Shown here: piece by piece, positions 9,160-23,223 of the stretch
How positions within the stretch are numbered: position 1 is the first letter of the stretch
Layout: each line of letters starts with the position of its first letter
Source: Wallemia ichthyophaga EXF-994
Lineage: Eukaryota > Fungi > Basidiomycota
Direction of reading: 5' to 3'
DNA length: 32,000 bases
Assembly (NCBI RefSeq): GCF_000400465.1
Contig: NW_008806283.1
Span: 150,001 to 182,000 of the forward strand
Notes under the pieces: model-generated
Database searches by the model: none
Told to the model about the DNA's origin: nothing
The model's input: the letters and a program-made list of their open reading frames with translations, nothing else
Position numbers and translations under genes: made by a program

Positions 9160-9593
9160 AAACAGACTATCAGGCTTTAGAACATAAAAGATTAATCAAA
9201 TAAATCATTAAAAATACAATCATAATGGCCTCAGAAAACACTCCAAGTCCCTCACGACAAACCACGTCAAGACATTGAAATCAACGTCGACAATTAGTTC
9301 GCGTGCACGTCATCGAGAGGCTGGCAGCGTGCTACCACCTCAGAGTTCTCGGTGAATAAGGGAAGGAGGTCACTAGTCATCGTCGAGCCAATGATAAAGT
9401 GGCAGAATTAAATCTGCGATAGACTGGATACGACCTATAGAATATGATCCTTTGGAGTACCTGACGTGCTGTGTGAGCATTGCTTCTAATCCACTTTAGT
9501 TGTTCACTAACCGTCTTAAAGTTTTAGGAAGAGAAGAATTACCTCTTTATACCAATCCCGTTAACGTAGATTAACGAAGTTTAACGAGGTGAT
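9160..9593 (+). repeat. Left arm of a long inverted repeat (434 bp)
   Basis: Manual alignment to the reverse complement of 22786-23223: identical except substitutions at 9323/23056 and 9541/22838, plus 1-nt and 3-nt indels within about 20 bp of the outer end. Confidence 0.97.
9560..9589 (+). repeat. Three 10-bp phased units NTTAACGNRG (gttaacgtag, attaacgaag, tttaacgagg)
   Basis: Read directly; the mirrored copy is at 22790-22819. Confidence 0.9.
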
Positions 9594-9667
9594 TATATGC
9601 ATGGAATGTTTAAAATACAAGGATATTTATAAATGGTACACTACTGATTACACTCCTATCAATTATT

Positions 9668-11707
9668 CTATGCGGCAACAACTTGGCCGCCTTCAACAAT
9701 ACCGACTACTTCGGCACCCTCCTCGTTTTCAGGATCACGTCCACCTGGTCCTCTAGATTGCTTGCGTTTGCTAGAAGCACTTCCGACAGATACTCTGCGG
9801 CCGCGACCGTGATGCTCCTCTTCGTCTGGATTCACGACCTCCTCCGCTCCATCAGCGTCCTCCTCCTTCTTCTGAACATCTTCACCTTGAGGCAAGGGTG
9901 TCGGAAGGCGTACTTCTGGCGGAGGACCACTGAGGTCTACGCCTATGAACTTGCCATACTCAATGAGGTCAAACGGTTTTCTATTCTTGAGTGCTTGTGT
10001 GATGAGATCACTATTGTACTTCTCTTCTCTGCTAAACTTTGCTTTAATAACTCTGCGTGTACGACCTTTGAACAACATTGCTATCATTTCAAAGTCAGTG
10101 CCAAATCTACTAAGAGCCTTAGAGCAACGTGAGCGTGAGTGCTGGGTAAAGTCACATACTCACATCGTAGAACATTTCAGTCTCAAGTCTTGTCCATCTG
10201 TCTTGACGACCTCTTCCATTGCCTCTCCACGTATTGGTATTCACAAATCTATCCGTATCGAGTTCCTCGGTAACTTCATACGCCGAAGTGTCGTTACGAG
10301 AATGCGCAGAACGGTCGACAAGCAAAGACTGCTCATCTATAACAAGCTTTCCGTTGACCAATCTCATCTGCGGACCTTGCTGGTCATTTGTCTCGTCATC
10401 TTCATCGTCATCGGAAGAAGACTCATTGTTATCATCGCCATCAACTACTTCCTCCACACCCTCTTCAGCTTTCCTCTGATCTTTAATACGCTTCTTTTCG
10501 GCCTTCTTATCTTCCTTTTTCTTTCGTGTTGTTTCATCTCTCTCCTTCCTCTGCTTCTCTTCATCTTCGACGGTTCGCCTGCGACCTGTACCATCATCAC
10601 CAGCATCTTGTTTCAAATCTTCTTCATTCAATTCTCTCAATCTAACTTTCTCCTCTTTCCGCCTTTTTTTCATTTGTGCGTGTTTCTTTGTGACGTCAAC
10701 AACTCTACTACTCAGTCTGCCCACGCCGGGATCGTGAATGAGATCGGACATTTTGTAAGTACTTGTGTCTATTGGCTGAGCTTCCGGATCATCACGCCAA
10801 ATCTCCTCGATTGGTCTCTTTTTCATTCTCATCTTCTGTGTGCGTAACTGCCTAGCTGATAGCTTTGCATTATTTGCTTTTATCTCGGCTTCTTCAAGTT
10901 GATCGTCCTCCTCGCCATCATTCTTTCTCGTATTAGCGCGAGTTTGATTTTCTTTTTCTATTAAGTTGGTTTCTTGTTGCGATGAAGTGCCTACTTCTAT
11001 TCCTTGAGCTGGAGTTCCTCTGGTTGCTTGAGATGCTCTCGTCTGTAACGGATTTTGAGCAGCTCTGGTGTTAAGGGGAGCGGCTGATGATGTAGGAGTA
11101 ACAACAGCTCGCGTCTGAAGCGGCGTCTGTGATGCTCTTGTATTTAGAGGTTGCTGCGATTTTTCTTCCTGCTGTTGGTGATTGAAACGTTGATTGAAGG
11201 ATAAGGTGGAAGAAGCTCTTGATGGCAAGATTGGAGTTGGACCTTGCTTTTGCTGTGATGGTTGGGGTTGCTGGGATGATTGAGGGAGTTGAGGCTGTTG
11301 GATTGGTGCTGGTGTAGGTAAACCAGTAGCCTGCTCAGACTGCTGAGACCGCTGAGATTGCTGGGATTGCTGAGGTTGTTGGATTTGCTGTGTGGGAGCA
11401 GGTGTAGCAATTCCAGTGTTAATTTCCTGGCTTTCCCCAATCTGCTCAATCGCCGGAGTTGGCTGAGATAATTCGATATTCTCATTGGAACCTTGTTGGT
11501 GAATAGACTGAGGAGCGTCTTGCGTGGCTGGTGGAGTTGGAAGTGGGTGATCAGCATCTGTCTCTGTCTCTTTCTGCTTGGGCTTTCCAGGTGGTTTCCT
11601 AGCCTTGTTGTTCAATTTTGGTGGTATTTTAAGGCCACCCTTCTCTATAAAGCCAGATTAAACAGCTAATCAAATAACAAAACACACTCACTGATTCTAC
11701 CGCTCAT
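9668..11707 (-). CDS. BDP1: TFIIIB subunit B'' (Bdp1); introns 11645-11691 and 10118-10163
   Basis: Spliced SANT/Myb domain RWTRLETEMFYDALSRFGTDFEMIAMLFKGRTRRVIKAKFSREEKYN, preceded by KMSDLIHDPGVGRLS and GPQMRLVNGKLVIDEQSL motifs typical of Bdp1. Short first exon MSGRI. Confidence 0.92.
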
Positions 11708-11763
11708 TTAACTTGATAATTTGAAACCAAGATCGTCATCTTCACTTACTATCAACTCTAATT

Positions 11764-20150: not shown

Positions 20151-22419
20151 TTACGTATTCATGCCATCTAAGGCTAATCTTGCTGGTTCACTAACGGAGA
20201 ATTTATCCTGAGACAAAGTCAAGAGCGATTTATCGAATTCCAATAAACGCATACGTGTACGTATCTCACTACGAGCTTGGTAGGGCTGACCTTCAATTGA
20301 ATTCGAAAGGTTACGAAGTGTCCATACAGCAGCAGCTCTAACTCTCTCATCCCAGTGCGTAAGTAATCGCTTCAAGTTGCTGCATATAAGCGGTCGCCAT
20401 AGCAACGTTTTCTTCTGTTCATATGAGCCAGTTGCGACATTATTTACAACATACGCAGCTTGCAATAAAATCTCTACTTGATTTGTTTGAAACTTATGTT
20501 CAATAATCTCCAGAAACTTATCCTCTCCACCAAATCCACTACAAACCAGATTGATATCTACTTCTCTTGTAACTAAATTTCTCAAAACAAATAAAACTTG
20601 CTCAACAACTTCGCTATTGCTGTCATTCAACAGCTTCTTGAAGTGATTATATCCAATTTGATCACAAATAAACCTCTTCAACTCTGTCGATGCAGCAAAA
20701 ACCATATTCTTAATAGCCCAAAGAGTATTCAATCTAACCTTGTGCGATTTCGAGTACGTAAGTTTCACTAGAATCTTTACTCCACCATTTTGTATTAACT
20801 TTTGCTTTAATGGTGAGAATCCGCACACTAAGTTAGCTAAAGCCATCAAGGCTATCACTTTATTACGTTCATTTTCCTCATCATTAGAGATTATGCTCAA
20901 TAATGTCAATTCAACACCTGAATCAACCAATGATGTACGCAACACTCCTACACTTCTACTCAGTGCTCTGATGCACTGTGCAGCTGAGCCTCGAATACCT
21001 TTGGCTTTATGTTGTAAAGATACCGCGATTGCTTTTAATAAATGTGCATCAACGATCAATGTTCTCAATTCATCTAAATGAAGTGCAAGCGCTGCAACTA
21101 TCATCAGAATCCCTTCTTGTAATTTCAGGTTGTCTTCTGATAGCTTACTACCTTCCACGTTGTACTCGTCTTTTTCATACAGCAGACAAGTCTGAAATAT
21201 ATCATTCAGCTTGTTGAGTATACCTGATTTGCACGCATGGTCTTCTAAGTCCGTCGCATCTGACAATATAGTCGCTAAGATGGATGATGCCGGTATCTGT
21301 ATCTCAATGTTTTCATCAAGTAGTCGAATCAGCTGCTCGATTAACTCCAATGCTTTCGGCCTATCAATGGTTGATATAAGTTGGATCGTCGGGGGTCCAT
21401 CGGGTCTAAGAAGGTCTGATTGCTGACTTTTGATAATGTGTACTAGTCTGTTGTTATAATATAAGTCGAATTCAAGATCATTTCAAAACAACTCACGTTT
21501 TACATGCTTCAAGTCTTAATTGGGGACTCTTGCATTCAAAAAATATTGTCAGTGATGGTATTGCTCTCACTATGGCATATAAATGTTAGAATCATCTAAT
21601 AGCATGAATCGGCACGGACTTTGTACCTGTCTAAATGCTAAAACCGCAGGTGAATAGTCTTTGCACAAGGAACCAAGCAGTTTGAGCGCTGCAATTTGAA
21701 GCTATGAAATGGTTAGTTGAATATAATTAAATAAAGGGATCTCACTTTTTGTACATCGCAATAGATGTATTTAGCCAAATGGTCAAGCAGACCCTCTACG
21801 GAAAGAAGCGATGCTTTGTGTCGAGTATCATTCACTGTGGTCAACAAAGTGATCAAGTTGATGACGAGTTTTCTATTAGACGATGTGAGATGTTTGAGGA
21901 GATTAGGTAGGTGCGGAGACTGAATGAATTTGTAAGTCTTTGGCAGGATAGAGCTACATTACCTACAAAAAAAATGTTATTGAGTTGCGCTGCAGCCCTA
22001 GAGCATATATCGTCATCGATTTGCATACTATCTTTGTCGATACCGGCTCTATTGTTATTCGAAAAGGTGGTGATTGTTTTGTAGAAGATAGATGCATTCC
22101 GTAGACATCTGAACAAGTACTCAAGGACGCGTTGACAGTTACAGACGGTTGCAGTCTCAACTAAGCGTTTAACGACGCCATCAAGTACATTGATTAATAG
22201 GTATTGATGATTTGGTTCCATGTTTATATTGGTGTACAAACTGCCAATAATTAACGAAGATTGTATCAGCCTGTCAGTATCAACTTGATTATGTAAATTC
22301 GACGGCGAAATCTGATCAATCAATGATTCCACTTGGCCTTTACTCTCAGAAAGCTGCTTCTTTTGTACTACATCTCCTATAACACTATTCTTAAGCAACT
22401 TCAACTGATGTGTATCCAT
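20151..22419 (-). CDS. VID28: Armadillo-repeat GID/CTLH subunit (Vid28/Gid5/ARMC8); introns 21920-21966, 21702-21745, 21570-21619 and 21448-21496
   Basis: N-terminal LKLLKNSVIGD. ARM repeats with AAQCIRALSRSVGVLRTSLVD and VRLNTLWAIKNMVF. The four-intron model stays in frame. Confidence 0.85.
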
Positions 22420-22785
22420 GACTGATGATGGTGCTGATGATGGTCAAGGTCGAGAAGGCAAAGTGATTAAAGCATTCATATATCTCAGCACATCAATAGC
22501 AACTTACAACTTAGCTGGCAAGATTTATAGGCACCACCGACAAACACCATCTTCCAGCTCCGTACATGAGATAAGACACAAATCAAGAGAGCGAGACATC
22601 AAAACCTTTCATTCGATCTATTATATTATTTGATAGCACGAAGCTTTTGTTGATACATACTGGTCTGCGACTCACACCATATATGAGCTACATCAGCCAT
22701 GTACAACAAACTCTAGGATGCGGTTGTCCGAACGGAATATATATTATCAACTTAAAGCATTCATCAGTAAGTCATAAACGCTTTT

Positions 22786-23223
22786 ATCACCTCGTTAAAC
22801 TTCGTTAATCTACGTTAACGGGATTGGTATAAAGAGGCAATTCTTCTCTTCCTAAAACTTTAAGACGGTTAGTGAACAACTAAAGTGGATTAGAAGCAAT
22901 GCTCACACAGCACGTCAGGTACTCCAAAGGATCATATTCTATAGGTCGTATCCAGTCTATCGCAGATTTAATTCTGCCACTTTATCATTGGCTCGACGAT
23001 GACTAGTGACCTCCTTCCCTTATTCACCGAGAACTCTGAGGTGGTAGCACGCTGCTAGCCTCTCGATGACGTGCACGCGAACTAATTGTCGACGTTGATT
23101 TCAATGTCTTGACGTGGTTTGTCGTGAGGGACTTGGAGTGTTTTCTGAGGCCATTATGATTGTATTTTTAATGATTTATTTGATTAATCTTTTATGTTCT
23201 AAACAAGCCTGATAAGTCTGTTT
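22786..23223 (-). repeat. Right arm of the long inverted repeat (438 bp)
   Basis: Reverse complement of 9160-9593 at about 99% identity by manual alignment. Confidence 0.97.

Follow-up and report, generated by a model that had tools for sequence, protein, structure and literature searches.

Inverted repeats that bound a chromosome block are known from several settings. In Ogataea polymorpha and Komagataella phaffii, the flip-flop that Maekawa and Kaneko reportedly described in 2014 uses arms of ~2 kb beside two mating-type (MAT) copies, and a flip is said to move one copy into silencing chromatin. The FLNA-EMD region of human Xq28, the Y-chromosome palindromes and the plastid inverted repeat have inverted arms that are homogenised by conversion; their orthologous arms diverge, and the spacer is open to neutral inversion through non-allelic homologous recombination. 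In Drosophila, staggered-break inversions leave inverted duplicates at both block ends with no transposon features, and these duplicates are lineage-specific, decaying and of arbitrary sequence. Here we analyse a 32-kb stretch of the Wallemia ichthyophaga EXF-994 reference genome (~150001-182000 of scaffold KE007233.1, GCA_000400465.1), hereafter the window, in which two near-identical inverted arms enclose a block of genes. The intronless ORF at 6259-7179 has an exact counterpart on record in this assembly only, and proteins of the block match those of W. ichthyophaga at 99% identity. Each arm is very probably a complete, intron-containing U3 small nucleolar RNA (snoRNA) gene, reading from the inner edge of the arm outwards.

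U3 is a box C/D RNA that chaperones the early processing of the 18S precursor rRNA and is needed for ribosome making. In fungi, U3 has a promoter with a TATA box, and a genome holds up to three near-identical copies of the gene, presumably under concerted evolution (PMC5832005). A GT-AG intron is common in U3 genes of the Basidiomycota; it is placed within the 5′ half of the first hairpin, its acceptor is CAG, and its branch site is ~15 nt upstream of the acceptor. The fungal consensus is GTRWGT for the donor and RCTRAC for the branch, 6-36 nt from the acceptor (PMC5832005). An earlier note on this DNA had read the repeat otherwise, as the ends of a segment that flips recurrently and keeps its arms homogeneous by recombination, or as the scar of one recent inversion.

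Two predicted U3 genes as the arms of the repeat

A repeat search of the window returned a sole long inverted pair, 9176-9593 and 22786-23203, of 418 nt and a rounded identity of 100%. We aligned the left arm, 9160-9593 (434 nt), globally with the right arm, 22786-23223 (438 nt), taken as its reverse complement, and find 432 matches, two mismatches and four gap columns. The substitutions are at 9323 (G; complement of 23056, A) and 9541 (A; complement of 22838, G). The two indels, of 1 nt and 3 nt, lie at ~9168 and ~9175, both at the outer edge. Near-perfect inverted arms with two substitutions and two outer-edge indels are what the earlier note had described, and the alignment confirms them. 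The similarity between the arms cuts off sharply on all four sides, the arms are 13,192 bp apart, and the window holds no N. We also agree with the note that neither arm cuts a protein-coding gene and that the arms show no transposase and no target-site duplication; terminal repeats were likewise absent. The note missed that the arms are themselves genes.

The 5′ end of the predicted RNA carries much of the evidence for U3. When the 51-nt intron is removed, the RNA reads AAGACG|GTACTCCAAAGGATCATATTCTATAGG, which corresponds to the GAC/A′/A region of U3. For comparison, the 5′ sequence of Entamoeba U3 is TAGACCGTACTCTTAGGATCATTTCTATAG, of which TAGACCGTACTC is the comparator to the exon 1 end and its GAC box (PMC3542256). 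The yeast snR17 exon-junction primer, GACGTACTTCATAGGATCATTTCTA, likewise provides GACGTACTTCA as a comparator to the exon 1 end (PMC3454408). We generalised the published Entamoeba and yeast U3 sequences to the 5′ motif GTACTN{4,5}GGATCATN{0,1}TTCTATAG. It matched exactly twice in the 32 kb, once in each arm (9435-9460 on the minus strand and 22919-22944 on the plus strand), and not once in 100 shuffles, so that zero matches are expected by chance. Both arms thus have the GAC box, a box A′ of the form TACTY and a box A of the form GGATCA..TTCTATAG.

Further 3′, both a box C′ of the form WYGATGA and a box D (CTGA) were found, together with a predicted terminal stem: UGGCU, which 4 nt (CGAC) separate from the downstream GATGA core of box C′, is able to pair with GGCCA on the 3′ side of box D. 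The predicted RNA of ~250 nt has two 5′ hairpins (M1 and M2), as is typical for U3 of fungi, in its minimum-free-energy fold. The fold z-score is -2.67, and one of 200 shuffles folds as well.

The intron has the features expected of a U3 intron. Its donor GTTAGT and branch motif GCTCAC depart from GTRWGT and RCTRAC by one mismatch each, the acceptor is CAG, and the branch motif ends ~10-13 nt upstream of the acceptor AG. The genes here have many tiny introns, as has been described for the W. ichthyophaga genome, and the 51 nt compare with a mean of 61 nt for its introns (PMC3849046). The splice signals are conserved across species, in contrast to the interior, where identity is down to 63-67%; this fits an intron. 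The TATA box, the position and signals of the intron, the low copy number and the concerted evolution all fit the published picture of fungal U3 (PMC5832005).

A stretch of more than 100 nt is nearly invariant across the arms of three species, and W. ichthyophaga and W. hederae share 98-100% identity in the 5′ domain of exon 2, compared with ~70-75% in neighbouring coding DNA. Three CGTTAA repeats upstream of the TATA box are kept in the three species while the surrounding DNA diverged; we regard them as a candidate upstream promoter element of the snRNA type. The repeat extends from ~40 nt upstream of the TATA box to ~60 nt beyond the 3′ terminal stem, which is the extent of a functional gene unit. 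If each arm is a whole U3 gene, this accounts both for the existence of the repeat and for the conservation of its core.

Several observations weigh against the assignment to U3. The general and fungal U3 models of Rfam 15 gave no match at the gathering score or at E≤10, either to the arm or to exon 2 alone, in searches that at E≤10 covered the unspliced intervals 9050-9700 and 9150-9475; Rfam yielded only weak, sub-threshold C/D-box matches in the A+T-rich 3′ flank. Relative to RTGATGA, box C (TCGATGA) has two deviating positions. The placement of box B is insecure: a candidate of the form AGYGA at 9370-9374 (AGTGA) reads AGTAA in strain SPOD and in W. hederae, and a constrained fold of the 3′ domain left the position of box B unsettled. 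An alternative B/C-like arrangement, consisting of the CTGA at 9340-9343, a hairpin and GATGA, is plausible. The GGAUCA of box A is exactly complementary to the UGAUCC that is universal in 18S rRNA, yet the predicted pairing of the RNA 5′ end with the 18S 5′ end is only slightly stronger than that of shuffles (RNAduplex, -18.4 against -12.9 ± 3.1 kcal/mol, with 4-8% of shuffles reaching -18.4); the 18S sequence in this comparison was taken from universal primers, not from the W. ichthyophaga genome. Finally, the cross-species comparison covers the inner arm and not the 3′ domain, as the contigs of the relatives end inside the arm.

We also considered other identities for the arm. Protein coding was rejected: each of the six frames has stops and holds only short open reading frames (ORFs), and the most conserved stretch contains an indel of 1 nt between species. 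A pheromone precursor with a CAAX end was rejected as well, since a 17-aa ORF ends in CSKA in the left arm only and in CSKQA in the right arm. The same 51 nt (9461-9511) look intronic in both directions, GTTAGT being the complement of ACTAAC and GCTCAC that of GTGAGC. An intron on the opposite strand (GTGAGC..ACTAAC..AG), with the arm as a 5′ untranslated exon of VID28, was rejected on the ground that the strand is set by the U3 boxes. Exact and degenerate patterns of the U3 5′ end returned no matches when metagenomes were scanned with them.

Gene conversion between the arms and the age of the pair

We compared the arms with those of other strains and species. In the short-read assemblies of other W. 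ichthyophaga strains, the block is always a separate contig of 13,250-13,763 bp, both ends of which are inverted copies of the inner arm. W. hederae has the same block on a 13,546-bp contig, with inverted ends of 185 nt at 97% identity. A third species (Logan SRR25399871, ~80% DNA identity) has it on a 13,578-bp contig, with inverted ends of 87 nt at 93%. The contig ends of W. hederae and of the third species are homologous to the arms of the window at 75-83%.

These assemblies bear on the idea that the arms are copies of a dispersed or mobile repeat, such as a solo long terminal repeat or a miniature inverted-repeat transposable element, or that one arm is an artefact of assembly, as the earlier note had allowed. 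The short-read contigs do break at the arms, as they would at any repeat. The repeat is nevertheless no assembly artefact, because independent assemblies, from several strains and two other species, give a lone inter-arm contig with inverted arm ends and so recover both arms. Against mobile DNA stand the absence of terminal repeats, target-site duplication and transposase, a core whose conservation of 98-100% between species is unlike that of mobile DNA, and the U3 boxes in the arms; moreover, fungal genomes usually hold at most three U3 copies (PMC5832005). We give this explanation hardly any credence.

Next to the conserved core, the arms agree within a genome and differ between species. The introns of the two arms are 100% identical within W. 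ichthyophaga and 96% within W. hederae, and only 63-67% between the two species. For the upstream region, the corresponding values are 99%, 88% and 49-55%. In the third species, the introns of the two arms are 73% identical over only 22 comparable columns. The same pattern is seen among strains, whose genomes are ~99.8% identical. In strain GCA_004917865.1, both arms have A at 9354 (G in both reference arms) and T at 9371 (C in both reference arms); the two arms of this strain differ from each other at 9426, 9525 and 9541. For one and the same change to stand in both copies, sequence must have passed from one copy to the other, so gene conversion has acted since the strains diverged. Purifying selection explains the invariant RNA core and not the rest of the arm, and conversion is therefore needed too. 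The comparison of aligned arms shows that conversion between the two predicted U3 copies is repeated and ongoing. The check for concerted evolution that the earlier note had proposed thus came out positive, and its suggestion that recombination keeps the arms homogeneous is supported.

Since homologous arms bound the same block in three species, the arrangement is old and is not the scar of a recent inversion. Judged from the contigs at hand, we show that the inverted pair of predicted U3 genes predates the divergence of at least three Wallemia species. An inversion scar, in which staggered breaks duplicated the breakpoint sequence in inverted orientation, would account for inverted duplications exactly at both block ends with no target-site duplication and no transposase. 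It does not fit three species that share the arms although their intron and upstream DNA is only 49-67% identical. The duplicated unit is moreover a whole functional gene, from promoter to 3′ flank, and not an arbitrary stretch, and conversion accounts for how alike the arms are. The recent scar proposed in the earlier note can thus be set aside. A single-inversion scar is very improbable, though an ancient event of this kind is conceivable.

Our preferred reading, which we hold to be highly likely, is that each arm is an independently transcribed U3 gene, and that the pair predates the split of at least three species and is homogenised by conversion. The two outward-facing paralogues, 13.2 kb apart, are homogenised time and again by gene conversion, in addition to the purifying selection that acts on the RNA. 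Crossing-over between the copies could occasionally invert the block, and such an inversion would be neutral and would work no switch.

Deeper synteny was followed through NVJ2 homologues (~60% identity) on two further contigs (L021 and L022). NVJ2 was the only gene in common, and the comparison was uninformative on the age of the arrangement. Positions 1-9000 of one of them (L022, JGI metagenome 3300076538) hold a ~6-kb tandem duplication, with the same 740-aa gene and its neighbours present twice, including an NVJ2-like gene. A separate observation concerns a fourth Wallemia-like lineage (contigs L004 and L005; Logan SRR33769985 and SRR33769983; ~70% DNA identity to the other three). At positions 1-3272, VID28 starts ~160 nt after the 3′ end of DSN1, on the same strand. 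VID28 alone is thus inverted relative to W. ichthyophaga, W. hederae and the third species, and one breakpoint of this inversion lies at the site of the right U3 copy in those three species.

Block orientation and gene content

Only in the reference assembly are the arms spanned, and the block has one orientation there; the 500-bp and 2-kb libraries of the reference are able to bridge an arm of 0.43 kb. The contigs of the short-read strains all end inside the arms and none crosses one. The left-flank contigs of seven strains end inside the left arm at 9294, 9326 or 9490, and the block contigs extend 115-287 nt into the arms. Because the flank and block contigs overlap only where the arms are identical, the single-nucleotide polymorphisms of the arms give no orientation for the strains.

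In a recurrent flip-flop, crossing-over between the U3 copies would invert the block often, both orientations would coexist in populations or even in one clone, and the homogeneity of the arms would be a by-product. Recombination between the arms is indeed recent and repeated, the 434 bp of nearly identical sequence give it a workable substrate, and an inversion would break no gene. Small inversions also occur in the genus, namely that of VID28 in the fourth lineage and that of the MAT region in 4 of 21 W. ichthyophaga strains (PMC6738226). On the other hand, no second orientation was observed, the one arm-spanning assembly showing a single orientation, and gene conversion is possible without crossing-over. 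A flip inside the arms would moreover leave every inner and outer junction unchanged and the local promoters unaltered, which provides no obvious regulatory effect. The earlier note had expected a flip to change the distal upstream context of VID28 and FMC1; an exchange inside the arms would keep all the local junctions and so leave the local upstream context of both genes as it is. We consider a recurrent flip-flop unlikely.

The frame of yeast mating-type switching, which the earlier note had cited for comparison, does not apply. The organism is a basidiomycete, long thought asexual. Its putative MAT locus comprises SXI1, HMG, STE3, BAP31, CAF1 and neighbours, and is inverted in 4 of 21 strains (PMC6738226). 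None of SXI1, HMG, STE3, BAP31 and CAF1 was found in the window. The note had rightly recognised no mating-type gene in the block, as we find no MAT, HMG, homeodomain or STE3 gene in the block or its flanks. Nor did the block or flanks show cargo that would depend on orientation, in the form of two MAT copies and a silencing region, or any other alternative-state cargo in the block, which further weighs against a flip-flop. A functional switch is highly improbable.

A milder form of inversion may be envisaged. The two U3 genes could act as an inverted-repeat cassette as old as the U3 pair itself, such that the 13.2-kb block flips neutrally, unrelated to mating type, with its orientations segregating among strains or species or within clones; we regard this as doubtful. 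That an occasional neutral inversion is polymorphic, or differently fixed in some lineage, is likewise unlikely. In summary, the locus is best described as a pair of ordinary duplicated non-coding RNA genes under concerted evolution, for which an occasional neutral inversion may be possible.

The features of the locus are listed in Table 1. The block appears to be an ordinary set of housekeeping genes. The earlier note had counted eight genes between the arms; seven of these were found by gene models and Pfam, and the eighth, SF3B5, was not confirmed. The ORF at 18317-18640 that it rested on had no Pfam match and lies inside the DSN1 gene model (18320-20066), and no gene is annotated between RRP47 and DSN1 (window 17711-18640) in the strain assemblies.

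Table 1 Features of the predicted U3 genes, the inter-arm block and its flanks in the window
Feature	Position	Strand	Remarks
Left arm, U3-L: complete predicted gene copy including upstream region, intron and 3′ flank	9160-9593	-	reads away from the block
Right arm, U3-R: second predicted gene copy	22786-23223	+	reads away from the block
Three CGTTAA repeats with 10-nt spacing, candidate upstream promoter element	9561-9586	-	mirror 22793-22818 (+)
TATAAAG box of U3-L	9545-9551	-	mirror 22828-22834 (+)
Predicted exon 1 of U3-L, ending ..TTAAGACG	9512-9524	-	GAC box, AAGACG; 5′ end approximate, exon maybe only ~7 nt long
Putative spliceosomal intron of 51 nt, GTTAGT ... GCTCAC ... CAG	9461-9511	-	mirror 22868-22918 (+)
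Predicted exon 2 of U3-L	9222-9460	-	3′ end approximate
Box A′, TACTC	9455-9459	-	exon 2 of U3-L
Box A, GGATCATATTCTATAGG	9434-9450	-	exon 2 of U3-L; 5′ boxes run GTACTCC..GGATCATATTCTATAGG
Box C′, ACGATGA	9377-9383	-	fits WYGATGA
B/D′-like CTGA	9340-9343	-	exon 2 of U3-L
Box C, TCGATGA	9310-9316	-	exon 2 of U3-L
Box D, CTGA	9231-9234	-	followed by GGCCA, 9226-9230
A+T-rich 3′ flank of U3-L	9160-9221	-	within the repeat; holds both arm-arm indels
U3-R intron	22868-22918	+	second arm
U3-R exon 2	22919 to ~23157	+	second arm
U3-R box A	22929-22945	+	second arm
U3-R box C′	22996-23002	+	second arm
U3-R box C	23063-23069	+	second arm
U3-R box D	23145-23148	+	second arm
Inter-arm block	9594-22785		13,192 bp, 7 annotated genes (gene models and Pfam)
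BDP1-like	9668-11707	-	Myb_DNA-bind_7
Met2/Cys2-like acetyltransferase	11821-13408	+	gene model/Pfam
Coiled-coil gene	13441-13953	-	gene model
NVJ2-like	14339-17132	+	PDZD8_N/MMM1
RRP47/C1D	17159-17700	-	Sas10_Utp3; annotated product spliced
DSN1/MIS13	18320-20066	+	MIS13
VID28/ARMC8-like	20151-22419	-	gene model/Pfam
FMC1-like gene (LYR family), part	23747-23899	+	Complex1_LYR_2, E 1.9e-08; just outside the right arm
tRNA-Gly(GCC)	7527-7607	-	gene-poor left flank; ARAGORN, 81 nt

Some observations concern the flanks. Rfam at gathering score gave no match for the tRNA-Gly(GCC) at 7527-7607. The contigs of a 98.7%-identical W. ichthyophaga lineage end inside this tRNA gene, and a contig of strain SPOA (L016) diverges from the reference exactly at 7608, the border of the tRNA. 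This pattern suggests a multi-copy tRNA and/or a structural variant there. At the other end of the window, 28973-32000 has no ORF of at least 90 aa on either strand, and its G+C falls to 0.33-0.38.

Comparison with known systems

None of the annotation gene tables examined lists an RNA gene at the arms, and U3 snoRNA appears to be missing from the automatic annotations of Wallemia. The coordinates and the intron of the arms would fill this gap. What looked like an invertible chromosome segment becomes, very probably, a pair of unannotated essential RNA genes. This is a caution for genome scans, in that near-perfect inverted repeats with no transposase may be duplicated non-coding RNA genes under concerted evolution. 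The locus also presents a clean natural case of conversion between inverted repeats that are short (0.43 kb) and separated by 13 kb. This conversion can be traced both between species and among strains, and the locus could serve to estimate how frequently inversion comes with it.

The likeness of the Wallemia locus to inverted-repeat inversion systems is one of geometry only. As in Ogataea and Komagataella, two inverted repeats flank a block, there of some 10-100 kb, that is invertible with no gene breakage. In contrast to that system, the Wallemia arms are predicted U3 genes of 0.43 kb, with no MAT gene and no centromere or telomere evident, and a flip would leave the local junctions unchanged. 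The arms of FLNA-EMD, the Y palindromes and the plastid inverted repeat exceed those of Wallemia 10-1000 times in length, and there is direct proof of inversion there, whereas the Wallemia locus displays the conversion half only. Unlike the breakpoint scars of Drosophila, the Wallemia duplicate comprises an entire conserved gene, is common to three species and is actively homogenised.

The closest likeness is with other fungal U3 genes, such as snR17A and snR17B of S. cerevisiae and the basidiomycete set of Canzler, Stadler and Hertel 2017 (PMC5832005). The Wallemia copies have in common with them the TATA box, the GAC, A′ and A boxes, the boxes C′ and D with a deviating box C candidate, and a spliceosomal GT-AG intron placed 5′ within the first hairpin, in its first half. 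Fungal genomes likewise hold two to three near-identical paralogues, whose near-identical introns have been attributed to concerted evolution. Unlike those genes, the Wallemia copies are not scored by the Rfam U3 models. The Wallemia intron separates the GAC box from box A′, while that of S. cerevisiae is apparently further 3′, nearer to box A, as judged from the primers (PMC3454408). What is locally new is that, in no fewer than three Wallemia species, a linked and inverted U3 pair encloses the same block of seven genes, and that the gene is invisible to Rfam. Unlike other fungal U3 genes, the two predicted copies are linked in inverted orientation 13 kb apart and kept so across these species, and the conversion between them is documented at the population scale.

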